Position numbers and translations under genes: made by a program. From IMG/VR virus record IMGVR_UViG_3300031857_000002, positions 256,176-320,175 of that record: a stretch of DNA of 64,000 nt; one strand, given 5' to 3'. The notes under the pieces were generated by a model. That model searched no databases. It had not been told where the DNA came from and saw nothing but the letters and a program-made list of their open reading frames with translations. Numbering within the stretch: the first letter of the stretch is position 1; each line of letters starts with the position of its first letter. Of the stretch, positions 1,063-33,136 are shown one piece after another.

Positions 1063-1511
1063 GCTGATTTCCTTTGTTTTAAATATTGTTCCCATTGTAT
1101 CCACTGATTCTTGACCAGGAATCCCCAGTCGCGTTGTTTGGGTCCGGGCATGAACAAGGTCCAGGCTGTGATGTCAGGATCAAGTTCAATGCGATGAAAA
1201 CTGTTGGCCTTGCTGATTCTAAAATGTCCCGGTCCGCGCCACACCTGGTACTCACCAGTTTTTCTTCCCACAGTATCAAAGTGCGGGATCCATTCCCAGT
1301 AGCCACCTTTTAGTATGAGAGTGGCATAAGGCCAAGGATGGTCATGCACATCATCGGGATCTGATTTGAGAAACTTGTGCAAAAACACATTAAACGGGAA
1401 TCGTTCACGTTCCCGGAGAAACAAATAATAGCGTTCAAGATATGGTTCATTTTGTACTCGGTCCATCACAATGCGTTTGCGTCCCAAACGGTCCAAAAGT
1501 TTTAATAGCAT
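1059..1511 (-). CDS. Cupin-fold protein
   Basis: DVHDHPW...ILKGGYWE and FHRIEL cupin-type motifs; SD GGAG and own promoter. Confidence 0.65.
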   Translation of the reverse strand: MLLKLLDRLGRKRIVMDRVQNEPYLERYYLFLRERERFPFNVFLHKFLKSDPDDVHDHPWPYATLILKGGYWEWIPHFDTVGRKTGEYQVWRGPGHFRISKANSFHRIELDPDITAWTLFMPGPKQRDWGFLVKNQWIQWEQYLKQRKSA

Positions 1512-1532
1512 TGGCTACTCCTTTACAACACA

Positions 1533-1561
1533 ATTATACAACATCACGCATTATTTGTCAA
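1533..1561 (-). promoter_or_regulatory. sigma70-type (early) promoter
   Basis: TTGACA-17 bp-TATAAT, perfect consensus, upstream of cupin gene. Confidence 0.85.
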
Positions 1562-1572
1562 TAAGTATTTGG

Positions 1573-2715
1573 ATGGAAAATTATCATCCCGAAACCTATT
1601 GCACCTATGCGTTTGGTGGCTATGCCAGTCACGAAAAATGGATATGTTGTGCCGGAACAGGCCAGTTCAACAGCTTTGCCGAAGTTAACCAAAGTGAAGA
1701 AATCCAACAACTGCGGCAAGCACTACAGCGTGGTGAGCGTCATCCCACCTGTGCAGTGTGTTGGGACGCAGAAGCGGCCGGGAACGCCAGTGCCAGGTCT
1801 GTAGGATCTGCTGATCGAGACTGGCAAAGGATTCAAATTGAATTTGCAGAACCCAAACTGCGACATCTTTGGATTGACAGTGGCAGTGTATGCAACTTGG
1901 CTTGCAGAATCTGCGAACCCAGATACAGTAGCAGTCTCTACAAAGAGCACAAGGATCGATTTGGGCATACCACTGTGCCTATTACCAAGACCAATGTGGC
2001 GTATTTGATCACAGAAGACTTTAGCCAAATCGAAAACATCATGATACTAGGCGGTGAGCCATTTCTGAACCTGGACTATTGTGCTGTGTTAGAGGAAATT
2101 GTGCGCCAAGGTCGTGCTGGCCAATGTACCTTGGTGTTTTTCAGCAATGGTACTGTGCGCCCAAGTCAACGTGTGATAGATTTGCTGGCGCAGTTTTCAC
2201 AAGTGGTATTGTATTTCAGCACTGATGCTGTGGGAGACCAATTTGGGTATGTACGTACCAATGGCATCTGGTCTCAGGTCATAGACAACATCGACTACAT
2301 TGCATCGGCAAGTATTCCGCAGCTCAGGCAGAACTTTCACATAACAGTGAGCGCATTGAATGTGATGTATCTAGATGAGTTACTCTCCTGGATGGCCGAG
2401 TATTATGGTGCTGGACAAGATCCTCGTGCGGTAATTGCCCAAGCCATGAGCGAACACCGAATAACCTACATGGTAACCAATCGTCCCTCGCACTACTCGT
2501 TTGGTATTTTTACTGATGCCCAGCGTCAACAGGTATTAACACATTTGGAACATAGTGCTTTTGATCTACAAGGTATTGCAAATCAAATTACCAACTACTC
2601 CTATACACCTACACATGCTGAAAAGTTCTGGTCAGAGACTGAGTGGACCAAACAGTACCAAGGTCTAGCAGTTGAACAATACCTACCAAGGTTGGTCAAC
2701 ATCTTGCAGTCGTAA
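1573..2715 (+). CDS. Radical SAM protein with N-terminal Cys-rich (twitch/SPASM-like) segment
   Basis: CNLACRIC (CxxxCxxC), ILGGEPF, FSNG, FSTDAVG; N-terminal C..CC..CAVC; start MENY 5 nt after TAAGTA. Confidence 0.85.
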   Translation: MENYHPETYCTYAFGGYASHEKWICCAGTGQFNSFAEVNQSEEIQQLRQALQRGERHPTCAVCWDAEAAGNASARSVGSADRDWQRIQIEFAEPKLRHLWIDSGSVCNLACRICEPRYSSSLYKEHKDRFGHTTVPITKTNVAYLITEDFSQIENIMILGGEPFLNLDYCAVLEEIVRQGRAGQCTLVFFSNGTVRPSQRVIDLLAQFSQVVLYFSTDAVGDQFGYVRTNGIWSQVIDNIDYIASASIPQLRQNFHITVSALNVMYLDELLSWMAEYYGAGQDPRAVIAQAMSEHRITYMVTNRPSHYSFGIFTDAQRQQVLTHLEHSAFDLQGIANQITNYSYTPTHAEKFWSETEWTKQYQGLAVEQYLPRLVNILQS

Positions 2716-5534: not shown

Positions 5535-5936
5535 TTACAGCTCAATAGCCCTGCGGAACAAGATTTCTTGTTTGGCAAATGCCTGAATCTCCCAAGGCTG
5601 GTCCAGGTACGGCACCTTGCGTCCGTAGTACTTGCCTTTCCACAGCTTGCCACGTGGGGTCAACTGCAAGGTGCCTTTGGCAAACTGTGCTACATGAGTG
5701 AGCTCGTGTGCCAGGGTTGCACCCAACAAGGTTTTGTCTTTTTGCGGTTTGATCACAACCAAGTAGGTGTCAAGGCCATTAAGCGGCACAGTGGTGCCCA
5801 GGTCCTCAAGATCACGGTCTATCATAACATGCAGGAATTTTTTGCTGGTAGTCAGTTTCAACTGCTCTAGCATGGAAGGAAGCAAGCTCTCAACAAAACG
5901 TTTGGTTTGGCCTCGGCCGTCAACATGAAATTCCAT
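5535..5936 (-). CDS. Putative Zn-metallopeptidase (HExxH)
   Basis: TLAHELTHVAQ plus downstream PWEIQA glutamate. Confidence 0.7.
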   Translation of the reverse strand: MEFHVDGRGQTKRFVESLLPSMLEQLKLTTSKKFLHVMIDRDLEDLGTTVPLNGLDTYLVVIKPQKDKTLLGATLAHELTHVAQFAKGTLQLTPRGKLWKGKYYGRKVPYLDQPWEIQAFAKQEILFRRAIEL

Positions 5937-5942
5937 GTGTCA

Positions 5943-5997
5943 CTCCTTTTTAATTACTATACAAGTATTATAGCAAATGGGGATTTATTGGTCAACC
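5943..5997 (-). repeat. Early promoter-RBS cassette, copy 2
   Basis: Near-identical to 5453-5507; TTGACC-17-TATAAT then AAGGAG. Confidence 0.9.
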
Positions 5998-6988: not shown

Positions 6989-8116
6989 ATGCAATGTAAA
7001 TTTTTAAAACATGGTCTGGCTATCAGTTACGACCACGTGGTCAAGCCCTGTTGTGAATGGCAGCAGGATTCCAATTACCCAATTCAGAATCACATCAGTC
7101 AAGTTGACCTATCAACTTGGCATCAAAAAAACAAAGTTTTTGAGCAACAATTGGCCAACAATGAATGGCCTGTAGCCTGTGGTCAATGTCAGCACAGAGA
7201 ACAACAAAATCGTCAAGACAGCATAAGATTAAACGGCAAACAATCCTATGCTCATTACACCGAAGACGATATTACTTTGGAAATTCGTCCAGGCAATGTG
7301 TGTAACTTTAGCTGCCAAACTTGCTGGCCAGAAGCCAGCAGTCGTGTGAGTCAACATCATGCACAGGCAGGATTGATTAATATCAAGTCTATTGACAGTA
7401 AACAAATAGATAACTTTGACTTTTTACTACCGATTGCCTCAAGGATCAAAGATGTAGTGTTGCTGGGCGGGGAACCATTTTATGATCCTAACTGTAAAAA
7501 GTTTCTAGCCTGGTCACAACAAAATCTTCGCAGCCGCATCACAATGTTTACCAATGGTAGTGCGGTAGACTGGGATTGGGTTGATAGTTATCCTGGACGG
7601 ATCACCATGGTGTTTAGCATAGATGCTGTGGGCACCGCAGCCGAGTACATTAGATTTGGAACCGACTGGTCACAAGTTCTATCTAATTTTCAACAGGCTC
7701 AAGCACACGCCAAGGTAGATCTACGGGTAAACATCACTGCATCTGTGTACAACTACTACCACCTGGACCAGGTGATTGATTTGTTACTGCCACACTGGCC
7801 TACAGTAGTGACATTTGGCAGTCCCAGAATTGAGTATTTTTTAGAATCCTGTGTGCCGCTAAGGCATCGTACTGCAATAATTGATCGATTACAATTGGCA
7901 TGTGTGCGCATCATGAAAAGCACAGTACCACCAGATCAAAAAACCAATGCAATAAATGCACTAAAATCTATTATTACAAATTTAAAAGTCAAGGACTGGG
8001 ACCAAGACCAGTACACCGCGTTAAAAATCTATGTGCAAAAGATGGATCAGGTCAAACATGTAACTGTGAGAGATCACTGTGAATTTTTAGCTGATGTGTT
8101 AGATTTTTCCGAATAG
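6989..8116 (+). CDS. Radical SAM protein with N-terminal Cys-rich segment
   Basis: CNFSCQTC, LLGGEPF, FTNG, FSIDAVG; N-terminal C..PCC..CGQC. Confidence 0.85.
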   Translation: MQCKFLKHGLAISYDHVVKPCCEWQQDSNYPIQNHISQVDLSTWHQKNKVFEQQLANNEWPVACGQCQHREQQNRQDSIRLNGKQSYAHYTEDDITLEIRPGNVCNFSCQTCWPEASSRVSQHHAQAGLINIKSIDSKQIDNFDFLLPIASRIKDVVLLGGEPFYDPNCKKFLAWSQQNLRSRITMFTNGSAVDWDWVDSYPGRITMVFSIDAVGTAAEYIRFGTDWSQVLSNFQQAQAHAKVDLRVNITASVYNYYHLDQVIDLLLPHWPTVVTFGSPRIEYFLESCVPLRHRTAIIDRLQLACVRIMKSTVPPDQKTNAINALKSIITNLKVKDWDQDQYTALKIYVQKMDQVKHVTVRDHCEFLADVLDFSE

Positions 8117-13573: not shown

Positions 13574-13799
13574 CTTGATCAATACCAAAATGGCGTCTGA
13601 CTGCCCGGCTGGTGTTCCAGCCAATGTTTTGGAACAGGTTTCGGTCAATCACTGTGGTACATTCTTCTACAATCAACTCGGCGAACTTTTGGTAAGCCTG
13701 TTCACATTCTTCGGCACCCATCCATTTGGGCCATGGTTCGCCTTTGACGTCCACATACATTCCTGCCTCTTGAGCAAGTTCTTGAATTCGTTTGTTCAT
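13563..13799 (-). CDS. Hypothetical protein
   Basis: 78 aa, ATGA-coupled to upstream gene. Confidence 0.6.
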   Translation of the reverse strand: MNKRIQELAQEAGMYVDVKGEPWPKWMGAEECEQAYQKFAELIVEECTTVIDRNLFQNIGWNTSRAVRRHFGIDQVDE

Positions 13800-14428
13800 G
13801 TTCGTTCCTCAATGGAATAAAACCAATCATCCCCGGCTGACCACTTGCGTGTGCCATCCACTGTGAATATGGTCTGTGCGGCCTTGAAGTCTGGAAACTT
13901 AACATTGCCAGAAATCAAACTTTGATCATACCACAAGCATCGATTGTTGGGCTGGCAGGCAAACTGTCCGTTTTCTAATCGAATAAAATTAAAGCTCTTG
14001 TGTTCTTCTGCAACTTCGGTAAAACCGGTGTCCACATCCATGCCGTCGGCACAAAAGTCCACAGTGAACAAATAGGTTCCGTGATGCCATTCTTTGTCTT
14101 TGCCCAGAAACTTCACACCTAGATTACGTAGACCTATTTTTTCAATGATAGTGAAACGATAACCCATACAATCCCAAAGCTGTAGGATATCTATGGGTAG
14201 ATTGCCGGTGTGGTCTTGTTGCCATACATAGGCATGGATTGGCAATTTGTCGTAGAGTGCTCCGTAGTTGGGCAACAAGCTCTCAATACGAAACACTTGT
14301 CCACGTAGAGCTTTGAGACTGACCCAGATGGCGGGTTCAAGTTCTCCATGACCTTGTTCAAAGTTATAGAGAAATTCTCGTTTGACCCAACACTTGATGG
14401 GCGGTAATGATCCCACAATGTAACTCAT
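13796..14428 (-). CDS. Hypothetical phage protein
   Basis: 210-aa ORF in coupled operon; no motif assigned. Confidence 0.7.
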   Translation of the reverse strand: MSYIVGSLPPIKCWVKREFLYNFEQGHGELEPAIWVSLKALRGQVFRIESLLPNYGALYDKLPIHAYVWQQDHTGNLPIDILQLWDCMGYRFTIIEKIGLRNLGVKFLGKDKEWHHGTYLFTVDFCADGMDVDTGFTEVAEEHKSFNFIRLENGQFACQPNNRCLWYDQSLISGNVKFPDFKAAQTIFTVDGTRKWSAGDDWFYSIEERT

Positions 14429-16638: not shown

Positions 16639-18873
16639 TTATTTGTATTGTAAGTTCACCAGTTCTTGGTGTAATCGATCACTGGCTAGTCCACGCAACA
16701 ATCTCACATTGTCAACGTTGACTTGATTTCGATAAATCTCTCGTGGTGCATAAAAGCTCGCATCTGGCATGGCCACTGCGTATGCTTGATAACCTTGAGG
16801 TTGTGTTGCCATTGTTGCAATGTCTACTCGGCCTGCTAATTCATTTGGTTGAACATTCTTGTTTACTGCGTCTGTTTTTTGTTCTTGTGCATTTGCGTTT
16901 AATATCGCTGGACGTTGTTCCATTGCATCATTTAATGCTGACCGTCCACCCACTTTGATACCTTCATTCTGTGGAACTTCTACGTCTGGTTGTCTGTTAT
17001 TAATGCCCGGTGGTGCTTGTAAACTGTACATATCAAATTGACTCTGCATCATACTTGAGGATAACGATGCGCTTGGGTCAGCAAATACGCTTTGTGTTGC
17101 TGGACGTAGTCCACCAACATTGACCACGCTAGTTTGTGATACACTGGCTACATTTACTGCAGGTGCCTGTGATTGAATGTTAACAGTCGCAGACAATCCT
17201 GTACTTGTATTAGATTGTGTCATACTGCTAGAGATACTTTGTGTAGTTAATGTGCCTGCGACATTTTCTGCTTGTTGTTGTGCCTGTTGTGCATCTTTGG
17301 CTGCGGCTGACTCTGCGGCTTGAACCACTGTTTTGGCTTCGTTGCCTATTCTAGCTTGATTACTACTAATCATACTCATAACACTACTTAAACTAGGACT
17401 TGATTTGCTAGTGCTGTCACCTGCTGTTTTAACTTCGCCTGCTTTGGGTTGACTGCCGCCACCTTGCGGAGGAGGTTGATTTGCTGGTGTATTATTTGTA
17501 TTAGAAGCCGGCGGAGGTGGACCTTCTCGGGGAGGTGGACTACCTGGTGGCGGTTCTGAGCCTGGTGGAGGGGGAGGACTACCCGGTGGCGGTGGACTGC
17601 CAGGAGGAGGTGGAGGCTGTGTAGGATCATTCGCTGACATTCCTGTTGCAGGATCCATTGTTGAGGACTGTGTACCATCTGTAGTTGATGTGCTTGCCGG
17701 CGCAAGTTGTTTTGCTATAGCGAATGCATATCCTTTACAATTTGAACTGTATAAAGGATTAGCTATACAAGGATCAGCAGTGTAAATCATTGTTGCCCAA
17801 GCACCTTCTATAGACGAATTTGTACCTGATGCGGACCCTACAATTCTACTCGTACCCAGTAATGATTGATTCATACTTGATGGCAACAGATATTTGTCAC
17901 TAACTGATCCACTAGTGCCGTCACCTGTAAAACTATAACTCTTTGAATGTATAGACTGGTTGTTACTATTAGTAAGTGAGAATGTTGCATTTGCATATGC
18001 AGGCACGTTCATATACCATGAACACGATCCGTCTTGGTTGGTAGCAGTACATCCGTACCAACTTTGTCCAACTCTCCAATTAAACCCGTAATTAAATCCA
18101 TGTACTCTAGCACCAACACCTGCACTTTGTAATGCTGTATTAATAGCAAATGCTTGATTTAGACTAGAACCACCTTGAGTTGAATCTAATAAATTATTAG
18201 TGTTAAGAATGTTACCAAAGCCAGCACAAGTTGAACTATAAGCAGGATTACTAGCACAGGGATCAACTGAGTATTTTAATTTAGCGTATACATCAGTAAC
18301 CACCGGCCCATACAAACCAGCCCAGCCTCCCGAGTCAACACCGGAGAATGAAATGTTTAGTTTATTAAGACCAGTGAGTGTGTATGGAGTTGCAAAGGTA
18401 ACATTCTGATTTTCTTGCTGCCAGGCATATAGCCACGTGTTATAATTAAAATTCTGAGAATATACATTAGTACCTGCTGAGTTAGTTAAACTAACATTAG
18501 CACTTAATTGATCAACTATGCCATTTGAATCAGTGCAAGATTGTTCCCCACCTATTTGGTTCTTACACCAGTTAGCATACCGCCATCCATATTGTAGCCC
18601 GTTGACTACAATGCCTGTTCCATTTAAGGCTTGATTGACTGCAATTGATTGTGATACGGTGCCAGCTTGCCAACTAAATTGATAACCATAACTGCCCCCA
18701 GCGCCAAACAACCCGGGTTCACCATTTCCAGTTGCGGTCCATCCAGTAGATCCGTTGGTGAATACTGGATTGGTAATCAAATTACCAGTAATAGATATAT
18801 CTTGACTGTTAGAATAGCTTGTGAGCAAGAACGCCAAGGATAGCGCCAATGCCAACTTTCTTATAAGTGTCAT
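16639..18873 (-). CDS. Large secreted protein with duplicated beta-rich domains and Pro-rich linker
   Basis: Signal peptide; two related modules each ending DPC..NP.YS..C; PPPPGS repeats; low-complexity C-half. Confidence 0.75.
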   Translation of the reverse strand: MTLIRKLALALSLAFLLTSYSNSQDISITGNLITNPVFTNGSTGWTATGNGEPGLFGAGGSYGYQFSWQAGTVSQSIAVNQALNGTGIVVNGLQYGWRYANWCKNQIGGEQSCTDSNGIVDQLSANVSLTNSAGTNVYSQNFNYNTWLYAWQQENQNVTFATPYTLTGLNKLNISFSGVDSGGWAGLYGPVVTDVYAKLKYSVDPCASNPAYSSTCAGFGNILNTNNLLDSTQGGSSLNQAFAINTALQSAGVGARVHGFNYGFNWRVGQSWYGCTATNQDGSCSWYMNVPAYANATFSLTNSNNQSIHSKSYSFTGDGTSGSVSDKYLLPSSMNQSLLGTSRIVGSASGTNSSIEGAWATMIYTADPCIANPLYSSNCKGYAFAIAKQLAPASTSTTDGTQSSTMDPATGMSANDPTQPPPPPGSPPPPGSPPPPPGSEPPPGSPPPREGPPPPASNTNNTPANQPPPQGGGSQPKAGEVKTAGDSTSKSSPSLSSVMSMISSNQARIGNEAKTVVQAAESAAAKDAQQAQQQAENVAGTLTTQSISSSMTQSNTSTGLSATVNIQSQAPAVNVASVSQTSVVNVGGLRPATQSVFADPSASLSSSMMQSQFDMYSLQAPPGINNRQPDVEVPQNEGIKVGGRSALNDAMEQRPAILNANAQEQKTDAVNKNVQPNELAGRVDIATMATQPQGYQAYAVAMPDASFYAPREIYRNQVNVDNVRLLRGLASDRLHQELVNLQYK

Positions 18874-19939
18874 CTAATTTTACCTCATCCAACTTTGGAA
18901 TCTTGTGTGGATTAGCTTCCCAACTTGCCTTGGCTTGTTCACCAATCTTGCCTTCGTATGGGCAAGGTGTACCGGCTGCCAACATAGCGTCAAACACACG
19001 ACGGTCTTGACACATGGTAGCAACTGCGGCTACCTTCATTCCCATGTCGTATAGTGTCTTTGAGAGTTTCAATCGTTCACAATTCATATCACGTACGGTA
19101 CCACCTGAACTAACACCAAATACTTGTGTCTGAACTGATCCAGAACTACCTGTACTACATAGGTCAGCGTTACCACCTGACAGCATAGCAGGTGCTACCG
19201 CAGTAGGCGGAGGTTGAATAACACGTTGCGTAATCTCAGTTTGATTAATATTCTTGTTGGTTAACTCACCTTGCTGAATATTTGTGTTAACTGAATTATT
19301 TTGATTAACATTATTGTTAACTGAAGTACTTGTAGAATTATTAATATTACGATTGGTCATATCACCAGTGTTAACGTTGTTGTTGGTAGAGGTACTGGTG
19401 CTGACATTGTTGTTGTTATTTGTAGCTGTGCTGGTACTCACATTGTTGTTGTTATATGTCATTGTACCAGTATTTTCGTTTTTGTTGATATTGGTATTGT
19501 TGCTGGTACTGGTGCTGACATTGTTGTTGTTGTATGTCATTGTTCCAGAGTTGATGTTGTTATTGGTATAAGTCATTGATCCTGAATTCACATTGTTATT
19601 GTTAACAGTGCTTGTACCGCTATTGATGTTGTTATTTGTGTTTACACTGGTACTGTTGTTATTGTTAGTATTTGCACTGGTACTATTAACTGTGGCTGCG
19701 CTGGTACTGGTACTGTTGCTGTTGGTATTGCTGTTTGAAGTAACTGTGCTGGTGCTGTTGCTGGTGCTGTTGGTATCAACCAGGGTTTTTGAGTCGTAGG
19801 TACCTTGGTTGATTAATGTACTTGTGCCAGTGGTTGTTCCACCAGCTGTACTAGATGTAGTGGTTGTTTGTGCTGTGGCAGTGACCACAAGCACAAGGCT
19901 GGCTAGGCCTATGGCAATTCTTTTTATCATCGTACTCAC
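18809..19939 (-). CDS. Secreted Asn/Thr/Ser-repeat protein with Cys-rich C-terminal domain
   Basis: Signal peptide, ~200 aa N/T/S repeats, PPPTAVAP...DLC...NCERLKLSK...MC...GTPCP. Confidence 0.8.
   Translation of the reverse strand: MSTMIKRIAIGLASLVLVVTATAQTTTTSSTAGGTTTGTSTLINQGTYDSKTLVDTNSTSNSTSTVTSNSNTNSNSTSTSAATVNSTSANTNNNNSTSVNTNNNINSGTSTVNNNNVNSGSMTYTNNNINSGTMTYNNNNVSTSTSNNTNINKNENTGTMTYNNNNVSTSTATNNNNNVSTSTSTNNNVNTGDMTNRNINNSTSTSVNNNVNQNNSVNTNIQQGELTNKNINQTEITQRVIQPPPTAVAPAMLSGGNADLCSTGSSGSVQTQVFGVSSGGTVRDMNCERLKLSKTLYDMGMKVAAVATMCQDRRVFDAMLAAGTPCPYEGKIGEQAKASWEANPHKIPKLDEVKLDDTYKKVGIGAILGVLAHKLF
19290..19760 (-). repeat. Coding tandem repeats (N[ST]G[ST]MTYxNNN[IV]; STSTSTNNNV)
   Basis: GTT/GGT-rich imperfect repeats visible in DNA and protein. 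Confidence 0.8.
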
Positions 19940-19994: not shown

Positions 19995-20013
19995 AAAAAG
20001 CCCCTTTCGGGGC
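19995..20013 (-). terminator. Terminator hairpin downstream of pstS
   Basis: AGCCCCGAAAGGGGCTTTTTT on minus strand. Confidence 0.75.
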
Positions 20014-20059
20014 TAGTGCTAGTTACGAGTTCTAGCCGTACTCTATTTTTGTACGCGGT

Positions 20060-21061
20060 TTACTTGATCTGTGTCCAAACACGCTCACGGATCTGCTTTG
20101 TTAAACTGTCTGGCAGTGCCACATAGTCTAAGTCTGCGGCATCTTTCTTGCCATTCTTGAATGCCCAATCAAAGAATTTTAGTACTTCATCGCTGGTGGC
20201 TTTGCTCTTTGGCTCTTTGTACATGATGATGAAACTGGCTGAACTTACTGGCCAAGCATTGGGGTTCTTTTGATCCACAATGCTCAATCCCATACCAGGA
20301 ACACTAAACCAATCAGCACCGTCTGCCGCGGCTGCAAATGTTAGGTCATCTGGGCTAACATATTTGCCTGACTTGTTTTGTAACTGTAGGAATACCATAT
20401 TGTTTTTCTTAACATAAGCATACTCTACATAACCAATTGAACCTTTGATACGGTTCACATTGGCAGCAACACCTTCATTGCCCTTGCCCCCTACACTATT
20501 TGGTGAGGGCCATTTAACTGCGGCACCACGACCTACTTTAGCTAGCCACTCAGGACTTACTGTAGCAAGATAGTCGGTCCAGTTGAATGTGGTGCCAGAA
20601 CCGTCGGCACGGTGAACCACTGTGATCAGTTCGTTAGGCAAATTTTTGCCTGGATTCAATGCCACCAACTTAGGATCATTCCATCTAGCAATAGTACCCA
20701 TGAATACTTCAGCCATAACTGGGCCGGTGATACGTAGTTCTCCAGGCTTGACGCCGTCTAAGTTAACTACTGGAACAGTGCCGCCAATGATGGCAGGAAA
20801 TTGAACCTGACCGTTTTTGTCTAGGTCTTCACCTTTGACTGGAGCATCAGTTGCACCAAAGTCTACGGTCTTTGCGTTGATTTGTCTAATGCCACCTGAA
20901 CTACCAATGCTTTGATAGTTCAAACTGTTGCCAGTTGCTTTCTTGTATCCTTCTGCCCATTTAGAATAGATAGGCATTGGAAAAGTTGCACCAGCACCTG
21001 TAATGTCTGCGTTTGCTGAAAATGTTACTGCGGTTAATAAGATTGCTAGTAGTTTGTTCAC
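20060..21061 (-). CDS. pstS: Phosphate ABC transporter substrate-binding protein
   Basis: Signal peptide, ITGAGATFP, YQSIGSSGG, DFGATD, HRADGSGTT, GKGNEGVA; GTG start with SD AAGGAG. Confidence 0.97.
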   Translation of the reverse strand: MNKLLAILLTAVTFSANADITGAGATFPMPIYSKWAEGYKKATGNSLNYQSIGSSGGIRQINAKTVDFGATDAPVKGEDLDKNGQVQFPAIIGGTVPVVNLDGVKPGELRITGPVMAEVFMGTIARWNDPKLVALNPGKNLPNELITVVHRADGSGTTFNWTDYLATVSPEWLAKVGRGAAVKWPSPNSVGGKGNEGVAANVNRIKGSIGYVEYAYVKKNNMVFLQLQNKSGKYVSPDDLTFAAAADGADWFSVPGMGLSIVDQKNPNAWPVSSASFIIMYKEPKSKATSDEVLKFFDWAFKNGKKDAADLDYVALPDSLTKQIRERVWTQIK

Positions 21062-21103
21062 TGAGTTCTCCTTGTTGTGACAAGATTATTTAAGGAGAAT
21101 AAT

Positions 21104-21121
21104 ATTACAGTTTTATTACAA
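21104..21121 (-). promoter_or_regulatory. Pho box upstream of pstS
   Basis: TTGTAAT-AAAA-CTGTAAT (11-bp period; consensus CTGTCAT-A(A/T)A(A/T)-CTGTCA(C/T)), then 10 nt, then TTAAATAAT. Confidence 0.75.
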
Positions 21122-21123
21122 AA

Positions 21124-21846
21124 TTATGACCAATATTTGGATGAATCTAAACTGTCCCAGTATTTCTTGTTATTTCGGTTAATAAAGTTCTTGATTAGAT
21201 ACTTGCCCATTCCAAGATATCCCATCTTCTTGAATCTACGACTATCCTGTCCAAAGTGATGTCGAACAATTTTAAACTTTCGAGGACTATACTTCCTTGA
21301 CAAAAAGTAATCCTCAGAGGTTGCAAACTGTTCAGGAAACCCGCCAAACTCGTCAAACTTATCTTTGCGTGTTAGCATGAATGCACCAACTGCAAAAGGT
21401 GAGAAAAATTTCAGTGTGTGATTTATGGTATTAAAAAGAGTGAATCCAACTATGGCCCGCATGTCACGATCATAACATTTGATGTTTAGCCCAACCAGGT
21501 CTAGATTCTTTGATTGAATTTTGTCAACTGCATCTTGAATCACAGTATTTTTAAAGAAGCGAACGTCAGCGTCAATAAACAAGATATAAGGAGTAGTGAC
21601 TAATCTTGCTCCGTTGTTCTTGGCAACACTAACAGGGCCACCATCAATGATTTCAACGTTCAATCCTGAGCTGTTATCTTGTATAACTTGTCTAGTATTG
21701 TCAGATGAACAATCAGCAATAATAATTCTAGTGTCACCAATGTTTTGTGCTCGCAATGAGTTTAACAAATGATGAATATAATTTTCTTCATTCTTGCAAG
21801 GTACTACTATAGTGATTTTGTCACTTAATTTTGTTGTCGTTTGCAT
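21124..21846 (-). CDS. Glycosyltransferase family 2
   Basis: TIVVPCKNEE, IIADCSSDNT, AKNNGA, ILFIDAD, SED. Confidence 0.9.
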   Translation of the reverse strand: MQTTTKLSDKITIVVPCKNEENYIHHLLNSLRAQNIGDTRIIIADCSSDNTRQVIQDNSSGLNVEIIDGGPVSVAKNNGARLVTTPYILFIDADVRFFKNTVIQDAVDKIQSKNLDLVGLNIKCYDRDMRAIVGFTLFNTINHTLKFFSPFAVGAFMLTRKDKFDEFGGFPEQFATSEDYFLSRKYSPRKFKIVRHHFGQDSRRFKKMGYLGMGKYLIKNFINRNNKKYWDSLDSSKYWS

Positions 21847-22001
21847 TGTCCTTCAACCTTAAAATTGTTAAATTTTAACTGCCACTTCATTGACGCCAGT
21901 GTCATTTCGCAACTGATCTGGTCCTTGAATGCCAGTTCTATTCTTCCTGGCACGTCCTGAGGATTGTTCACGTGAACCGCTATTAATATCAGTAACCACA
22001 T
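21825..22001 (-). CDS. 58-aa peptide with hydrophobic N-terminus, overlapping the phosphoesterase 3' end
   Basis: MWLLILIAVHVNNPQD...C..........C; bridges phosphoesterase and GT2. Confidence 0.5.
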   Translation of the reverse strand: MWLLILIAVHVNNPQDVPGRIELAFKDQISCEMTLASMKWQLKFNNFKVEGQCKRQQN

Positions 22002-22749
22002 TGTCTTTCTCCCGAGTCCAAGTAATGATTTCCCAATGGCCATCCCAGTGTTCTACAAGTGCTGTACATGATTCAACCCAGTCGCCATCATTCATGTATG
22101 TTACACCGTTGATTTCTTTTATTTCTGCATGGTGTATGTGTCCACAGATCACGCCATCAAATCCACGCTTCTTGCAATAGTCTGCTAGATTTTCTTCAAA
22201 CTTGAATATAAAGTCTACTGCTTTTTTAACTTTGTGCTTAAGAAACTTGCTAAGGCTAAAGTACCCAAAACCCAAGCGACGACGAATCCAATTAAATTTA
22301 TTGTTGAGGCCAAGAACAAAGTCATAGGCTTTATCTCCTAAGAATGCTATCCAAGGTGCCAGTCTAGTAATACCATCAAACAAGTCACCGTGGACAACTA
22401 AGTAGTGCTTACCATCAGCACCTATATGTTCTATTTGATTGTGTATTTCTATTAGACCAAAACTGAAACCATAGGGTATCATGGGTCTTAGGAATTCATC
22501 GTGATTGCCTGCAATGAATACAACTCTAGTGCCACGCTTGGCATGACCTAGCACACGACGAACAACATTGGTGTGGCTCTGTTTCCAACGCCATTTGTTT
22601 TGTTGTATACGCCAGGCGTCGATGATATCCCCTACCAGGTAGAGTGTATCACATGAGTTGTGTTTGAGAAAGTTATTGAGGCGATCGGCTTGACAATCTT
22701 TGGTTCCAAGATGGACATCACTGACAAAGATTGAGCGATATGTCTTCAT
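21868..22749 (-). CDS. Metallophosphoesterase of LpxH-like/PlcP (phospholipase C) type
   Basis: YRSIFVSDVHLGT..CQA, LVGDIID.W, GNHDEFLR, HGDLFD, GHIHH, NDGDWVESCTAL.E. Confidence 0.8.
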   Translation of the reverse strand: MKTYRSIFVSDVHLGTKDCQADRLNNFLKHNSCDTLYLVGDIIDAWRIQQNKWRWKQSHTNVVRRVLGHAKRGTRVVFIAGNHDEFLRPMIPYGFSFGLIEIHNQIEHIGADGKHYLVVHGDLFDGITRLAPWIAFLGDKAYDFVLGLNNKFNWIRRRLGFGYFSLSKFLKHKVKKAVDFIFKFEENLADYCKKRGFDGVICGHIHHAEIKEINGVTYMNDGDWVESCTALVEHWDGHWEIITWTREKDNVVTDINSGSREQSSGRARKNRTGIQGPDQLRNDTGVNEVAVKI

Positions 22750-22770
22750 CTATTATTTAAGATGATGACT

Positions 22771-22788
22771 ATTACAATTTTATTACAG
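22771..22788 (-). promoter_or_regulatory. Pho box upstream of PlcP-like/GT2 operon
   Basis: CTGTAAT-AAAA-TTGTAAT, then 10 nt, then TTAAATAAT: same geometry as pstS box. Confidence 0.75.
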
Positions 22789-22796
22789 AAACTAGA

Positions 22797-23450
22797 CTAC
22801 TCAGGTACTCTGGTCCAGGCTATGAGTGCTCGTTTGCCCGGGATACCATTTGCTAGAAAGTTGTCACTGGTGTGAAACTTGAATCTAGCGGCAGCAAACA
22901 TACTGCCTTTCTTCCACTTGAAGATATCTTCTATGGTAAACCAGTCAAACAAATCACCGGGAATGTGACTGAAATACTGTTGTCTTGTGGCAGCATCTAT
23001 TGTGGGATTTTCATACGGCGGCACATCTTTTGTGTACTCATGTGGTTCTTTGATGATGCTGCCTTCCTTGAACACTATGGTATGGCTGTCATAGGTGTCC
23101 AAGGGAATGATCAAGGTCCAAGCGGGCACAGTGGGTTCGGGACTTTTTTTCCAGCCACTGGCCACATCGCTGTGAACTCGATAAGGATCAACACAGTCAA
23201 AAATGTGTATTTGTTCAAAGAACAGGTCCTGACCAAATGCCTCTTGAAACTTGGGTGCCAGTATTTCAACTACCTTGGCAAAGTGTGAGTCATAGTAATC
23301 AAACACATAATAGTCACCGGACTTGACAATTTCTCCTGACGGCGTGGGGTTGAAATTTTCATGCGGCTTCACTGCCATGACCATGGATTCAATAGTGTCT
23401 ATTTCAGCATCAGACAAAAAGTTGTCAATAATTTTTGAGTCAAAGTTCAT
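22797..23450 (-). CDS. Putative 2OG-Fe(II) oxygenase-fold protein
   Basis: RVHSD (HxD), TLIIPLD, distal KFHTSD; start MNFD 5 nt after TAAATA. Confidence 0.5.
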   Translation of the reverse strand: MNFDSKIIDNFLSDAEIDTIESMVMAVKPHENFNPTPSGEIVKSGDYYVFDYYDSHFAKVVEILAPKFQEAFGQDLFFEQIHIFDCVDPYRVHSDVASGWKKSPEPTVPAWTLIIPLDTYDSHTIVFKEGSIIKEPHEYTKDVPPYENPTIDAATRQQYFSHIPGDLFDWFTIEDIFKWKKGSMFAAARFKFHTSDNFLANGIPGKRALIAWTRVPE

Positions 23451-23458
23451 GTGCATAT

Positions 23459-23746
23459 TTACATCAACATACGAATCAGACCCACACTGTCAATAGTGGT
23501 CAACAGTATATAGTTAGCCAGCATGCCAAAAGATTTCCTAGTCCAACTAGCCCAAGCATACAAACCACAGCCAAGGATCCACACAGGGTAAAGAGCAAGA
23601 AGCGGAGGCGTGGGTACGGTAAGTGCCATGACAATTGAACAACCAATACTAATACCCCAAGCAAGCAACTCAATAACAAAGCGAGTTCGGTTGGACTTAA
23701 AATCATCTCGTATCCAGTCAAATGTGTTAAGCAATATATCGTTCAT
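23459..23746 (-). CDS. Small multi-TM membrane protein
   Basis: Three hydrophobic segments in 95 aa. Confidence 0.65.
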   Translation of the reverse strand: MNDILLNTFDWIRDDFKSNRTRFVIELLAWGISIGCSIVMALTVPTPPLLALYPVWILGCGLYAWASWTRKSFGMLANYILLTTIDSVGLIRMLM

Positions 23747-24746
23747 AAACTTGTTCGCTGGCTAAATTCTTGCCTTTGGCTTCGCATTGAATATCAAAGT
23801 TGTTAGCAAAGGTCAGAGCCCAATCAGTCACAGCGTCATTCCAATAGAAGTCGCTGTGGGCTCGTAGTTTCTGTTTCTTATAACCTCTAGCAAGAAGTTC
23901 AGCAAGATCGGGTCTAGTTCCTCGGTCATGGTCAACCAAAACGTCCTCGCGACTAACACTATAATGAAGTGCAGGACGAGTGCCGCGCCAAGAGTCAATA
24001 ACCCGCTTGACGCGATCGTCCTGCGCGGTGATGTACTCTCCCGAGTTAATCCAGTGGTGGTGTAGGTCCAATACAAGAGCCACATGCTGAGCCACAGCCA
24101 AAGTAGTGTCAAGTCCATTTGTCATCTCATCATTCTCGATGGTAATTAAGTTTCTTGCTTCGGGGCTGAGTCTACCCAAAGTACGCAAGAATTTAGCGGG
24201 ACCACCTTTACCGCTCAAGTGTACGTTGATCTTAAAGCCGTTATCGTGCCAGGTATTACCATAACCCATCCAACGTGCCATATCAGCGTGGTATTCAAAT
24301 TCTAGTATGCTACGTTCTACAATCTCATCTGCTTCGCTTGCTAGTACACAAAACTGGCCAGGATGAAAGCTCAAACGCACACCGTATTTACGTGCGGCTT
24401 CGCCAATTGGGGCAAAAATCTTTGCACAGTGATCCTGAATTTCTTGGCGTTGCCACCATGCAATCCAGTTGGGCTCAGTGTAGCCCTGTAGCATTTCGCT
24501 ACCAAGACGTACCATTCTACGTTCAACGGGCAATGTGGCCACACGTTCAATCATCCGCACAGCCGCTGACGCATTGTGATTCATGATGTCCCATTGTCTC
24601 TGGTCTGCTTCGTTGGCATGTTCGCGAAGCCACCTCATGGTAGTTGATCTGCCGTTTAGGTCACGGTCCACTGCGTTGACTTTCATGCCACCACATTCAG
24701 TAGGGTCATTAAGCCATTTGCAACAAAAGCCAATTCGTGTGTTCAT
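23727..24746 (-). CDS. uvsE: UV DNA damage endonuclease
   Basis: RIGFCC, RLGSE, RLSFHPGQF.VL.S, INVHLSG, ITIENDE, VLDLHHH, HYS, AHSD, CEAKGK. Confidence 0.93.
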   Translation of the reverse strand: MNTRIGFCCKWLNDPTECGGMKVNAVDRDLNGRSTTMRWLREHANEADQRQWDIMNHNASAAVRMIERVATLPVERRMVRLGSEMLQGYTEPNWIAWWQRQEIQDHCAKIFAPIGEAARKYGVRLSFHPGQFCVLASEADEIVERSILEFEYHADMARWMGYGNTWHDNGFKINVHLSGKGGPAKFLRTLGRLSPEARNLITIENDEMTNGLDTTLAVAQHVALVLDLHHHWINSGEYITAQDDRVKRVIDSWRGTRPALHYSVSREDVLVDHDRGTRPDLAELLARGYKKQKLRAHSDFYWNDAVTDWALTFANNFDIQCEAKGKNLASEQVYERYIA

Positions 24747-25701: not shown

Positions 25702-26216
25702 ACGTGTCCTGTAATTTGCAATGTATATCGATCTTCCAGCCCAATATTGGCAGCCATGTGTGGTGCATCGTACACCCATTCTACAGTTGTACCTGCTGTC
25801 CATTTTACATAAGGCTGACCAATAACTTCTAGGTAGTGCCCTGATTGCCAGTCCTCTAACAACACTAATGCACGTCGGATTGACTGTTCTTGTCCTTGCA
25901 GATTAAACAATTCAATGTAACGTTTGTACAGGTCTTGATGTACCGGCATTACAGTACCTGTGGGCATGCGATAAAACGCAAGACCAATATCTTTCCATCC
26001 CATCTCAGTATAGATCTTAATAAACTTATCAGCCCATGCTGGTAAACGATGGCGCATGTCGCAAAGATCCCCGCATATTTTAGTGTGATATCCTTGTGCT
26101 AACCACTGAGACACGCTGACAGGATCGTTAAAAGGCTCCTGAATGTAATCAAGAGCCTTAAACTCATCGTCCCAGAATACAGGAAGATGATACTTATTGA
26201 CCACGTGTGTTGCCAT
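25698..26216 (-). CDS. 2OG-Fe(II) oxygenase (Asp/Asn beta-hydroxylase-like)
   Basis: GTVMPVHQD, W..G, PHMAANIG..DRYTLQITG. Confidence 0.7.
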   Translation of the reverse strand: MATHVVNKYHLPVFWDDEFKALDYIQEPFNDPVSVSQWLAQGYHTKICGDLCDMRHRLPAWADKFIKIYTEMGWKDIGLAFYRMPTGTVMPVHQDLYKRYIELFNLQGQEQSIRRALVLLEDWQSGHYLEVIGQPYVKWTAGTTVEWVYDAPHMAANIGLEDRYTLQITGHV

Positions 26217-27432
26217 AGTGAACAACCTTAACATCTGGGGTAGATGTCAGTTTGCGCCATGGGTCAACAATGATACTGCCCTTGGGGATGTCACAGTAGG
26301 CTTGTGTGTCTTGTTGCTCGCCTGTGTATTCGTAAGTGATCTTGCGATTGTGTGCCCACAAAAACACAGCAGGGCCGGCAACTTCCTTAATAACTTCGTC
26401 TTGGTTGTCTGCCAAGGGATCAACATAGCGCACATTAAATCCAGCTTGTTTGACATAGTGTCCAACCAAGGTAGAATAGCTACCAATACAGTATTCAACG
26501 TCTGGTTTGTAGGCTTTGCCATGAATCACAACACTCATGCCATTTTGTTTGGCTTGTTCTACCAGGAACAATGCCAGATTCTTGGCTTGGATTTCACGAG
26601 CATGCATGATTGTGTCAAACAAGTCATATCCTACTTCGTAGTGTTCTGCTAACCAACGAAGTGCAATATTATCACGTGGATGACAAGCACCTGCATCTCC
26701 CATGCCTGCTGTCATGTACTTGGGACCTTGTAGTCGCATGGTGCTTCGTGCCAAGGCGTTTGTAACAACGTCAACGTTGATGTTGCCAATCTTCATAGCA
26801 AAGTCTTGAATCATGTTAACAATACCAACCTTGGCCGAGATGTAGGTGTTGTAGAAGATCTTGATAGCTTCACATTCGTCCCAGGTGCCAATTTCGTAAC
26901 GTGGGTCGTTGTTCATGATTGTTTTGTACAACGCAATCAACTCACCTGCAATACCTGTAAGCTCGCCATCTTCTGTGCCAATGATAACCATCTCAGGATT
27001 GGCCATGTCCCACTTCACTGATCCCATGGCAATGAGGTAAGGATTGTACAAGAATTGATGTTTGGGGTCTAGCAATGTAATAAACTTGCTACGTGTGGTA
27101 CCAGGTAGCACCGTAGAAATCAACACAACTTTCTTGCTGGTCTTGGCATGTTGGTTGACTTTGTTGATGGCATCAATCACCGCATCGTGGCCAAAGTCCT
27201 TGGGGGTCATGTGACTTGATGGGACTGATCCATCATATCCTTCTGCGTGTGGGGTTGGCACAGCAATAAAGATCCATTCGCTTTCATTGACCAACTCGTC
27301 AATGTCGCAAACTTTTACAGTGTCGCTAGTACGTGGGTAAATATCATAACCCCGCACTGTGTGCTTTTCTGCCATAACTTCGGCGCAATCAAGGCCAAGT
27401 TTACCGATACCGATAAATCCAATTTTTTTCAT
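26194..27432 (-). CDS. UDP-glucose/GDP-mannose dehydrogenase family
   Basis: GFIGIGKLG, IFIAVPTP, STVLPGT, YNP, IKIFYN, GDAGACHPRD, KAYKP. Confidence 0.9.
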   Translation of the reverse strand: MKKIGFIGIGKLGLDCAEVMAEKHTVRGYDIYPRTSDTVKVCDIDELVNESEWIFIAVPTPHAEGYDGSVPSSHMTPKDFGHDAVIDAINKVNQHAKTSKKVVLISTVLPGTTRSKFITLLDPKHQFLYNPYLIAMGSVKWDMANPEMVIIGTEDGELTGIAGELIALYKTIMNNDPRYEIGTWDECEAIKIFYNTYISAKVGIVNMIQDFAMKIGNINVDVVTNALARSTMRLQGPKYMTAGMGDAGACHPRDNIALRWLAEHYEVGYDLFDTIMHAREIQAKNLALFLVEQAKQNGMSVVIHGKAYKPDVEYCIGSYSTLVGHYVKQAGFNVRYVDPLADNQDEVIKEVAGPAVFLWAHNRKITYEYTGEQQDTQAYCDIPKGSIIVDPWRKLTSTPDVKVVHYGNTRGQ

Positions 27433-29117: not shown

Positions 29118-29912
29118 ATGATGAATTTTAATTTTGACTTAATTTCTGATTTACATATTGAAACCTGGTCTGAAGAAATAGATTGGACCGGCATTGCTAC
29201 CAGCCCTGTGTGCGTGGTTGTTGGAGATATATCTAAGGACAGAAATATTGTAACCCGTGTGTTGACCAAACTTGGTCAATGTTATCAAGCTGTATTTTAC
29301 ATAGATGGCAACGACGAGCATCATGATTACTTGCATAAACTTGGGTATAGTTACGCTGATCTAGTGAGCCGCGTTAACAACATACCCAATGTAGTTTATT
29401 TACAAGACAATGTTGTAGTAATTGATGGAGTGGCTATCCTAGGTACCAATGGCTGGTGGGGGTTTGATTTTGATCTAGGAATCGACTATGTCAGCAGCCA
29501 AGAATGGTATCGTGAAAAATTTGGCTTGACTGCAGAAGCAACCCATGCAATATCTCGTATGGCCAACAATGATGCCATGTACATGATCAACTCAGTCAAG
29601 AGAATACAAACACACCAAGACGTTAAAAAGATTGTAATGATTACACATACTGTGCCAGATCCTGTGCTGATTGAACACGATATTGATCTAGAAGGCAAAC
29701 TAAAGTTCAACACCATGGGCAACAGATACATGAAACAGGTGTTAGAAGTTGATACTGAGAAAAAACTACATACCTGGTGTTTTGGACACTATCATGGTTC
29801 GATTGATCAAACTCGCAACGGCATCAGATATGTGAACAACTGTCGCGGCAGGGGTGACACACCTTATGGTAAACATGTGTACTACCCCTTGCGAATCACT
29901 GTGAGTTATTGA
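29118..29912 (+). CDS. Metallophosphoesterase
   Basis: LISDLH, VGD, DGNDEH, THTVP, FGHYH. Confidence 0.85.
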   Translation: MMNFNFDLISDLHIETWSEEIDWTGIATSPVCVVVGDISKDRNIVTRVLTKLGQCYQAVFYIDGNDEHHDYLHKLGYSYADLVSRVNNIPNVVYLQDNVVVIDGVAILGTNGWWGFDFDLGIDYVSSQEWYREKFGLTAEATHAISRMANNDAMYMINSVKRIQTHQDVKKIVMITHTVPDPVLIEHDIDLEGKLKFNTMGNRYMKQVLEVDTEKKLHTWCFGHYHGSIDQTRNGIRYVNNCRGRGDTPYGKHVYYPLRITVSY

Positions 29913-31945: not shown

Positions 31946-33136
31946 TTAGAGCTCCTTAGGACTATTTACCAGGGCTTGATCAATATCTACGTGCTTAATT
32001 CCGTCTGTGCGATAACGTGCTAGATTGTACATGTGCGGCAACAACACACGTTCTAGTTCTGAATGCAGGCCACGAGCGCCTGTTTTGTTTTTGATTGTGC
32101 GTTCTGCAATGAGATCCAGGCTGTCTGCAGTAAACTCAAGGTCAACTTCGTCTTGCTTGAACAACCACTGGTACTGACTTATGTAATTGTGCTTGACTTC
32201 ATTAAGGATACGTACCAGGGCTGTTTTATCCAGCTCTTTGAGCGCAACCCAAGCAGGGAAGCGACCTACAAATTCTGGGATTAATCCAAATCGCACTAGG
32301 TCATCTGGCGTGGTCTTTGACAGGTGTAACTGCCCGTCTGTTTTGCTAGAAACTTCTGCACCAAATCCAATGTTGGTGCCTTGCACACGACTCTTGACAA
32401 TGTTGTCTAGTCCAACAAATGCACCGCCTGCAATGAACAAGATGTTTGTGGTGTCAATTTCAATAGTGTCGCCCGACGGGTGTTTTCTGCCACCAGTGGG
32501 CATGACTCTACACTTGGTGCCTTCTACCAGTTTGAGCAAGGCTTGTTGTACGCCCTCGCCTGACACATCTCTTGTGATACTGGTGCCTTCGCTCTTACGA
32601 GAGATCTTGTCAATCTCGTCCACAAACACAATACCACGTTGTGTTTTGTCAACATCGCCGCCCGCGGCAGCATACAATCGACTGATCAAACTTTCAACAT
32701 CATCGCCCACATAGCCTGCTTCTGTTAGGCTAGTAGCATCTGCAATCACAAATGGCACATCTAAATAACGTGCCACAGTTTTGGCCAGTAATGTTTTGCC
32801 TGACCCTGTTGGACCAAGCATGAGAATGTTAGCTTTTTCAATTTCAGTGTTAGGGTCTTTGTTACGAATGCGTTTGTAGTGATTGGCAATGGCCACACTC
32901 AGCAACATCTTGGCATCGTCTTGTCCAATCACATATTGATCCAAATGCTTTCGAATTTCTCTTGGATCAAGATTGGGCGAAGCATCTGATATTTCAGGTT
33001 TATCTACCAACAGTGTTTGGCACAAGTCCACACACTCATTGCATATTGCAACACCTTCACCCACAATGAGTTTAGTCACTGTGTCTTTGTGTTTGTTACA
33101 AAAACTACAGGTGTCAAGATTATCGGATGTTTTCAT
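31946..33136 (-). CDS. clpX: Clp ATPase ClpX
   Basis: Zn finger [50 protein letters not shown]. Confidence 0.97.

Follow-up and report, generated by a model that had tools for sequence, protein, structure and literature searches.

Does a giant phage carry the means to strip phosphorus from the membrane lipids of its host, and to replace those lipids with sugar lipids, when phosphate is scarce? The question was raised by a minus-strand gene module within a 64,000-nucleotide stretch of DNA (positions 256,176 to 320,175 of IMG/VR record IMGVR_UViG_3300031857_000002), referred to here as the window. The window is part of a 320-kb phage contig from a very abundant jumbo-phage clade. A preliminary description, made from the sequence alone, noted contiguous genes for a phosphoesterase, a small peptide, a GT2 glycosyltransferase, and PstS behind two near-identical Pho boxes, and inferred that the phage senses host phosphate stress via PhoB, frees phosphate from membrane lipid, and patches the membrane with glycolipid. 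We confirmed the arrangement (Table 1), and the comparative evidence was stronger than could be seen from the sequence alone. Every part of the interpretation that could be tested by computation was supported, although enzyme activities, PhoB binding, and the use of the freed phosphate remain inferences.

Table 1. Features of the phosphate-related module, in window coordinates
Feature	Coordinates	Strand	Length	Description
Upstream gene	22797-23456		219 aa	No Pfam, PHROG, or NCBIfam hit
Pho box 1	22771-22788	-		CTGTAATAAAATTGTAAT; two 7-nt direct repeats (CTGTAAT and TTGTAAT, separated by AAAA) with an 11-bp period, taking the place of a -35 element upstream of plcP
-10-like element 1	22752-22760	-		TTAAATAAT, 10 nt after box 1; no sigma-70 -35 match here
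plcP	21868-22749	-	293 aa	PlcP-family metallophosphoesterase (phospholipase C type); conserved domain, residues 1-248 (down to about 22006)
Small conserved gene	21825-22001	-	58 aa	Hydrophobic N-terminus (MWLLILIAV...) and two conserved Cys; function unknown
GT2	21124-21846	-	240 aa	GT2-family glycosyltransferase (predicted GT-A fold); proposed diacylglycerol glycosyltransferase
Pho box 2	21104-21121	-		TTGTAATAAAACTGTAAT; TTGTAAT and CTGTAAT, separated by AAAA, upstream of pstS
-10-like element 2	21085-21093	-		TTAAATAAT, 10 nt after box 2
pstS	20060-21061	-	333 aa	Periplasmic phosphate-binding protein with a signal peptide; GTG start and AAGGAG ribosome-binding site
Intrinsic terminator	19999-20014	-		Hairpin (AGCCCC-GAAA-GGGGCT) followed by a T-run, closing the module

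Profile searches with Pfam and NCBIfam agreed on the three larger genes, which matched Metallophos, Glycos_transf_2, and PstS, respectively. The PstS assignment was above the curated thresholds (NF008171 at 403 bits against a cut-off of 339; TIGR00975 at 373 bits against a cut-off of 205), and the N-terminal signal sequence was visible in the translation.

To determine whether the phosphoesterase is a PlcP or an LpxH (UDP-2,3-diacylglucosamine diphosphatase), it was compared with both families. The protein was 56% identical (E = 3e-83) to the P. aeruginosa PA3219 orthologue, which sits in the PA3219-agt1-cyaB context, and 46% identical to the S. meliloti SMc00171 orthologue, which lies beside sinR/sinI. 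For comparison, PA3219 itself is only 46-47% identical to the founding PlcPs (PMC8528852). In a phylogenetic tree the window protein lay inside the clade that holds both references, whereas six true LpxH proteins split off with SH-aLRT 99 on a branch of 2.7. The metal ligands D11, H13, D41, N82, H120, H204, and H206 were invariant, and the NxGDWVESCTAL motif was present; the GDWVESCTAL block is found in the PlcPs and is a gap in E. coli LpxH. The nearest bacterial relative (54%) sits in a cluster of PhoX, an OlsF-like acyltransferase, GT4, PlcP, and GT4.

An LpxH identity, with the module altering lipid A and LPS synthesis, is what automatic annotation assumes: JGI, GenBank, and KEGG-style labels call these proteins LpxH, and virome papers list lpxH under LPS biosynthesis. 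However, the protein scored far below both LpxH equivalog cut-offs (NF003743, 46.4 bits against 134; TIGR01854, 35.9 bits against 190), was only 23% identical over 120 residues to E. coli LpxH, and matched the LpxH crystal-structure sequences with E = 2.6e-5. One Ralstonia replicon carries both a PlcP-like gene and an LpxH gene, so they are distinct paralogues. The LpxH reading is refuted by the phylogeny, and we consider it very unlikely.

The end of the phosphoesterase open reading frame required correction. Residues 250-293 are an unconserved read-through over the small gene, whose real start is the internal Met rather than the start, at 22043, of a 72-aa open reading frame; the coordinates of the small gene in the preliminary description were slightly off. 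A tblastn match to the small gene was present in 78 of 80 sister loci, with either of the glycosyltransferase partners described below, and it was also found in two distant loci at 35-46% identity. Its reading frame was 67.5% conserved, against 41.8% for the overlapping plcP tail, and its length was fixed at 56-58 aa. These results show that it is a real, conserved gene.

To evaluate whether the Pho boxes could have arisen by chance, we searched the window for the relaxed box TGT[AC]A[CT]-N5-TGT[AC]A[CT]. It occurred twice in the 64 kb, both times in this module, against 0.48 expected. The box plus TAAAT occurred 2 times, against 0 in 150 first-order Markov simulations. A plain match to the E. 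coli consensus with 3 mismatches was not enriched on its own (9 seen, 9.2 expected); the significance comes from the paired, positioned, and conserved architecture. In about 925 kb of sister loci the same architecture (box, exactly 11 nt, TAAATA) occurred 72-73 times. All 70 hits with a downstream open reading frame preceded one of three genes: plcP (49), pstS (10), or an acidic protein (11). The sister loci were all collected around plcP, so this census is not genome-wide. The spacing from box to TAAAT was 11 nt in 73 of 73 promoters although 9-14 was allowed, and the following A was invariant in 54 of 54 unique promoters. An equivalent box lies upstream of plcP in most sister loci, with divergent spacers and TGTAAT, TGTAAC, or TGTCAC variants, and bona fide bacterial plcP promoters show the same layout (PMC8528852).

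It is possible that this promoter is bound by another OmpR-family regulator or by a phage-encoded factor rather than by host PhoB, in which case the cassette would be timed by the infection program rather than by phosphate status. Most boxes read TGTAAT or TGTAAC, carrying A where the E. coli/Pseudomonas consensus has C (TGTCAT), and the host, and therefore its PhoB specificity, is unknown. Furthermore, a third, functionally opaque gene, encoding the acidic Ala/Val/Glu-rich protein, shares the promoter. However, the promoter occurs only twice in the 64 kb, so it is not a general phage promoter, and its other targets, pstS and plcP, are classic Pho-regulon genes. Some sister phages carry canonical TGTCAC-N5-TGTCAC at the same position. 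The layout (7+4+7 nt, 10 nt ahead of the -10 element, no -35) is that of PhoB-dependent promoters, and host PhoB control of phage pstS appears to be established in cyanophages (Zeng and Chisholm 2012). Control by a factor other than PhoB is therefore regarded as unlikely.

Attempts to identify the host gave no answer. No tRNAs were found in the window, and two freshwater papers gave no link. Phage contigs are binned into MAGs labelled Polynucleobacter, Haliscomenobacter, Crocinitomicaceae, and Gammaproteobacteria, assignments that conflict and look like binning artifacts. No DNA similarity to known phages was detected. A first search for homologous proteins returned only near-identical metagenome variants, which were useful for abundance but not for naming.

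The known partners of PlcP are Agt, which is a GT4 enzyme (PMC8231724), or Pgt (GT21). The window enzyme is not an Agt homologue (Atu2297, PB7211_960, PA3218). It matched Pfam PF00535 at 76.7 bits (cut-off, 23.3), with a much weaker score for PF13506 (27.7 bits; cut-off, 21.7), and its AlphaFold2 model (pLDDT 90.9) has a GT-A fold. The DxD (D92, D94) and ED (E178, D179) motifs are intact and were invariant in 18 homologues, and the C-terminus is basic and aromatic. The enzyme is an analogue of Agt by position and association, not a homologue. Of 80 sister loci, 54 carry this GT2 and 23 carry an Agt-like GT4 within 200 nt downstream of plcP, typically starting 25 nt after its stop. None carries both, and the partner changes at least 15 times on the PlcP tree. 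The GT4 is 39% identical over its full length (E = 1e-82) to the P. aeruginosa Agt1 orthologue. In addition, SAR86 single-cell genomes carry a GT2 homologue (60-63%) in an operon with plcP, divergent from phoX, on bacterial contigs, and an Acidobacteriota MAG pairs a 35% GT2 homologue with a distant PlcP-like gene. Searching phage and plasmid collections with the GT2 by tblastn gave hits of at most 31% identity and no further context.

One alternative is that PlcP works as proposed but that the GT2 acts on a different acceptor, such as lipopolysaccharide or O-antigen, a polyprenol phosphate, or a carotenoid/hopanoid-type lipid. It might, for example, change the cell surface and block superinfection, its place behind plcP reflecting co-regulation rather than a shared pathway. 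Pelagimyophage glycosyltransferases have been read as surface-modifying enzymes (PMC7029224). The solved structures closest to the window enzyme are teichoic-acid, polysaccharide, and polyprenol-phosphate transferases (TarS, TarP, a fucosyltransferase, and a polyprenol-phosphate mannosyltransferase), so the fold does not show the acceptor. The best NCBIfam hits are lipid- and carotenoid-type GT2 families, all far below their cut-offs. However, the GT2 and a true Agt GT4 are mutually exclusive occupants of the same slot in 77 of 80 loci, with repeated swaps, GT2 is paired with plcP independently in SAR86 and in the Acidobacteriota MAG, and there is no sugar-polymer or LPS gene cluster around it. 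A different acceptor is therefore considered improbable, but it is not excluded.

The explanation that we favor, with reasonable confidence, is that this is a phage auxiliary-metabolic cassette that reproduces the bacterial PlcP-glycosyltransferase lipid renovation pathway and couples it to phosphate uptake, apparently under the control of the host's phosphate-starvation regulator. In the proposed mechanism, phosphorylated PhoB in a phosphate-starved host binds the two Pho boxes, which replace the -35 element, and recruits host RNA polymerase to transcribe plcP, the small gene, and GT2 and, separately, pstS. PlcP would cut membrane glycerophospholipids into diacylglycerol and a phosphorylated head group, which host phosphatases can turn into phosphate for the large (over 300 kb) phage genome. 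The GT2 would glycosylate the diacylglycerol to a phosphorus-free glycolipid, so that the membrane holds until lysis, and PstS would raise phosphate capture. PlcP family membership, PstS identity, the promoter architecture and its conservation, and the interchangeability of GT2 with an Agt-type GT4 rest on sequence comparison. In contrast, PhoB as the binding protein, phospholipase C activity, diacylglycerol as the GT2 acceptor, and the fate of the phosphate are inferred, in the absence of biochemical or expression data for any of these phage genes, and a role for the 58-aa protein is not explained.

A broader possibility, which we regard as no more likely than not, is that an abundant clade of jumbo phages and, more loosely, pelagiphages and cyanophages that carry plcP actively convert host phospholipid into phage phosphorus under phosphate stress. 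In that case the genes reported in viromes as lpxH would really be plcP, the 240-aa GT2 would define a new GT-A-fold class of diacylglycerol glycosyltransferase, interchangeable with Agt and also used by SAR86, and the 58-aa protein would be a phage-specific partner of PlcP. Phage phosphate genes known so far (pstS, phoA, phoH) act on external phosphate, whereas such a cassette would add the host membrane as an internal phosphorus source. By our rough estimate, that pool in small planktonic cells is worth several phage genomes, which matters most for phages with genomes over 300 kb. It would also link viral infection to the glycolipid/phospholipid ratios used as markers of phosphate stress in waters, and the conserved promoter would offer a compact example of a phage borrowing a host two-component regulator outside the cyanophages.

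No description of a phage plcP was found in the literature library searched. In the bacterial PlcP-Agt operons (P. aeruginosa PA3219-PA3218, SAR11 HTCC7211, Phaeobacter MED193, S. meliloti SMc00171, and B. cenocepacia plcP-agt-dagK), as in the window, a glycosyltransferase lies directly downstream of plcP, the promoter carries a Pho box, and the logic, inferred in the case of the window, is phospholipid to diacylglycerol to glycolipid under phosphate stress. The module in the window differs in being carried by a jumbo phage, in the predicted GT-A-fold GT2 in place of the GT-B-fold GT4, in the conserved small gene between the two enzymes, which has no counterpart in the bacterial plcP operons examined here, and in the pstS attached under a second Pho box. 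In the SAR86 operon the same GT2 subfamily is paired with PlcP (46%) in a phosphate-stress neighborhood, but the gene order is reversed (GT2 then plcP) and there is no small gene and no pstS. The pstS and phoA of cyanophages and the pstS of pelagimyophages (PMC12379486) likewise appear to use the host Pho regulon to express phage genes only when phosphate is scarce, but they raise phosphate uptake or scavenging from outside the cell, and the host of the present phage, although unidentified, is probably not a cyanobacterium. Pelagibacter phage Mosig EXVC030M (MT647606) and Synechococcus phage S-SRM01 carry homologous PlcP-family genes (49% and 37% identity) annotated as a putative UDP-2,3-diacylglucosamine hydrolase and LpxH, with no glycosyltransferase following and no lipid-remodeling role proposed in the genome announcement. 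The overlapping 72-aa open reading frame of Mosig is unrelated to the small protein of the window, but in Mosig, too, the PlcP-family gene lies beside pstS.

Pfam and NCBIfam searches identified three genes within the cassette (see the table) as encoding Metallophos and Glycos_transf_2 proteins and a PstS equivalog, the last at 403 bits against a cut-off of 339. The preliminary description of contiguous minus-strand genes for a phosphoesterase, a small peptide, a GT2 glycosyltransferase, and PstS, with two near-identical Pho boxes, was correct. The window also encodes a head maturation protease, a weak virion-structural match, a tail-fibre-like protein, ribonucleotide reductase, a DNA ligase, and an exonuclease. 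It has no DNA match to any GenBank phage. The contig to which it belongs (IMGVR_UViG_3300031857_000002) is 320 kb, and relatives reach 331-367 kb. The clade is very abundant, and the 120 best of 8000 scored metagenome hits are all 86-98% identical to it. Phage-like contigs carrying this cassette were found in GTDB species-representative MAGs labelled Haliscomenobacter, Polynucleobacter, Gammaproteobacteria, and Crocinitomicaceae, but this probably reflects binning contamination, and these labels are unreliable as evidence for the host.

Coordinates of the features of the cassette, its surroundings, and related loci
Feature	Location	Coordinates	Strand	Remarks
Pho-box-like direct repeat, first	window	22788-22771	-	10 nt before TTAAATAAT
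Metallophosphoesterase ORF (plcP)	window	22749-21868	-	293 aa
Small overlapping gene	window	22001-21825	-	58 aa from the internal Met
GT2 glycosyltransferase	window	21846-21124	-	240 aa
Pho-box-like direct repeat, second	window	21121-21104	-	near-identical to the first; 10 nt before TTAAATAAT
pstS	window	21061-20060	-	
Hairpin plus T-run terminator	window	20014-19999	-	
Nucleotide-sugar dehydrogenase, divergent	window	26194-27432	-	3.4 kb upstream of the cassette
Two large secreted-looking proteins	window	16639-18873 and 18809-19939	-	744 aa and 376 aa; just downstream of the cassette
Radical-SAM genes	window	1471-2715, 6989-8116, 50585-52012, 52290-53294, 63150-63953		at least five in 64 kb
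UvdE UV endonuclease, second metallophosphoesterase, ClpX-like ATPase, phrog_3704 family member	window	23727-24746, 29118-29912, 31946-33136, 13796-14428		host-like genes
Acidic Ala/Val/Glu-rich protein	sister phage loci L062 and L004	L062:7703-8650 and L004:11703-12347		214-315 aa in 11 loci
RimK-like ATP-grasp gene	sister phage locus L087	6901-7791		between plcP and the Agt-like GT4
GT2-plcP operon	SAR86 single-cell genome L113	7995-9432		divergent from phoX
pstS-plcP intergenic region	Pelagibacter phage Mosig (L001)	5900-5985		TTAACA-type direct repeats

The phosphoesterase is PlcP, not LpxH. Both NCBIfam LpxH equivalog models were missed by a wide margin (46 against 134 bits, and 36 against 190 bits), LpxH crystal-structure sequences matched only at E = 2.6e-5, and identity to E. 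coli LpxH was 23% over 120 residues. By contrast, the protein is 56% identical (E = 3e-83) to the P. aeruginosa protein that lies upstream of a GT1/GT4 gene and cyaB, which is the PA3219-PA3218-PA3217 arrangement described previously (PMC8528852), and 46% identical to the S. meliloti protein next to sinR/sinI, the position of SMc00171. For comparison, PA3219 itself is only 46-47% identical to the founding PlcPs. In a maximum-likelihood tree, which was built with quick methods, six true LpxH proteins formed one clade, separated by SH-aLRT 99 and a branch of 2.7 substitutions per site, whereas the window protein nested inside the clade that holds both PlcP references. One of the six LpxH proteins comes from a Ralstonia replicon that also carries a PlcP-like gene. 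All metal ligands are conserved, and the GDWVESCTAL block, a gap in E. coli LpxH, is present. The closest bacterial representative (54%) sits among PhoX, an OlsF-like acyltransferase, and two GT4 genes, which is a phosphate-stress lipid cluster. Phage homologues annotated "LpxH" exist in Pelagibacter phage Mosig, beside pstS, and in Synechococcus phage S-SRM01.

To determine whether the two direct repeats might have arisen by chance, the 64-kb window was scanned for the relaxed box TGT[AC]A[CT]-N5-TGT[AC]A[CT]. The box occurred twice, both times in this module, against 0.48 expected, and the box with TAAAT downstream occurred 2 times, against 0 in 150 simulations. A bare 3-mismatch scan with the E. 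coli consensus was not enriched, so the case rests on architecture and conservation. Upstream of plcP, most sister loci have the same two hexamers 11 bp apart with divergent flanks and spacers, and TGTAAT, TGTAAC, TGTCAC, and TGTCAT variants all occur. Across about 925 kb of sister loci, which were sampled around plcP only, the full motif occurred 72-73 times, and the 70 hits with a downstream ORF precede plcP (49), pstS (10), and an acidic Ala/Val/Glu-rich protein (11). This third protein has matching N- and C-terminal coiled-coil-like repeats (RL.AVEAKL...) and no Pfam hit, and its gene is usually just after the GT2. Two features were not imposed by the search: the distance from box to TAAAT is exactly 11 nt in 73 of 73 cases although 9-14 was allowed, and the next base is A in 54 of 54 unique promoters. 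No -35 match accompanies either box in the window. Bacterial plcP promoters in P. aeruginosa and in locus L012 show the same layout with TGTCAC. This is the signature of a PhoB-type, OmpR-family activator site, although PhoB binding itself is inferred. In phage Mosig, TTAACA-type direct repeats with an 11-bp period (TTTTAACAAAAACTTAACA) lie ahead of TATAAT, and it is possible that these represent a different Pho-box dialect for a SAR11 host.

The small ORF that overlaps the end of plcP can be read as 72 aa, but in most relatives this ORF is interrupted upstream of its internal Met, and the conserved product, with a consensus beginning MWLLILIAV, starts at that Met. A tblastn match to it is present in 78 of 80 loci, and in the distant loci L109 and L110 at 35-46% identity, where the plcP ORF ends at about residue 248 (L110) or after only a short tail (L109). 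Over the same DNA this frame is 67.5% conserved, against 41.8% for the plcP tail frame, and plcP length varies from 261 to 296 aa while the small protein stays at 56-58 aa. It is therefore a real gene tightly linked to phage plcP, but its function is unknown.

The GT2 is not the known partner of PlcP; Agt enzymes are GT4 with a GT-B fold and Pgt is GT21 (PMC8231724). The AlphaFold2 model of the window enzyme is confident (pLDDT 90.9) and has a GT-A fold, and the DxD and ED motifs are invariant. Its fold and sequence neighbours are generic GT2 enzymes. The decisive evidence is comparative. Of 80 sister loci, 54 carry this GT2 and 23 carry a 330-340-aa GT4 within 200 nt downstream of plcP, typically starting 25 nt after its stop, and none carries both. 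One more has a RimK-like insert before an ORF of the same GT4 cluster, and two contigs end too early to tell. The partner changes at least 15 times on the PlcP tree, a count that was also made with quick methods. The GT4 is 39% identical over its full length (E = 1e-82) to the P. aeruginosa Agt1 orthologue, which makes monoglucosyl-diacylglycerol. Independently, four SAR86 single-cell genomes (L111-L113 and L116) carry a GT2 homologue (60-63%) overlapping plcP (46%) in an operon divergent from phoX, with a weak Pho-box-like TTTCACATAATTGTCTCAT in the intergenic region. The contigs carry a TonB-dependent receptor, FabI, and a cyclopropane-fatty-acid synthase, and the operon appears to be an uncharacterised variant of the lipid-renovation operon in SAR86. 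An Acidobacteriota MAG pairs a 35% GT2 homologue with a distant PlcP-like gene. The most economical reading of these results is non-orthologous replacement, in which the GT2 does Agt's job.

These comparisons are consistent with a mechanism, inferred without experiments and for a host that is unknown, in which PhoB activates two transcripts, one of plcP, the small gene, and the GT2 gene, and the other of pstS. In this model PlcP would release diacylglycerol and phospho-head groups, the GT2 would make a glycolipid, and the phosphate would support replication of a very large genome. The divergent nucleotide-sugar dehydrogenase upstream of the cassette (UDP-glucose/GDP-mannose dehydrogenase family; TIGR03026 at 134 bits, below its 190-bit cut-off) could supply UDP-glucuronate for a glucuronosyl lipid, but it has no Pho box. 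pstS is optional in the clade (about 10 of 80 loci, on either side of the cassette), and the window therefore shows the fullest version.

Full-text searches of a literature collection that was not exhaustive found no phage or viral plcP. Pelagimyophage papers discuss pstS and surface glycosyltransferases but not this gene, and virome surveys list "lpxH" as an LPS-biosynthesis AMG, in one case enriched in surface oligotrophic water. The pathway is known in bacteria, and PhoB control of phage pstS appears to be established in cyanophages. However, a phage-borne lipid-renovation cassette, its GT2 variant, and the small partner gene appear to be undescribed.

Of the two large secreted-looking proteins encoded just downstream of the cassette, one (744 aa) has a long PPPPGS-type proline repeat and the other (376 aa) is almost entirely Thr/Asn/Ser runs, and neither has a family hit. 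The second metallophosphoesterase in the window belongs to phrog_1649, and phrog_3704 is a 'ferredoxin' AMG family. Around the cassette, the sister phage represented by L003, a 93-kb ENA contig, carries a carbamoyltransferase, an amino-acid-binding protein, a dicarboxylate symporter, an Asp/Glu racemase, rubrerythrin, a TctC-like binding protein, and a porin, an unusually rich set of host-type transport genes of which the porin and TctC genes may be most typical of Betaproteobacteria. In addition to the radical-SAM genes of the window, sister loci carry runs of four or five radical-SAM, SPASM, and B12-binding genes just past the cassette, as in L004.
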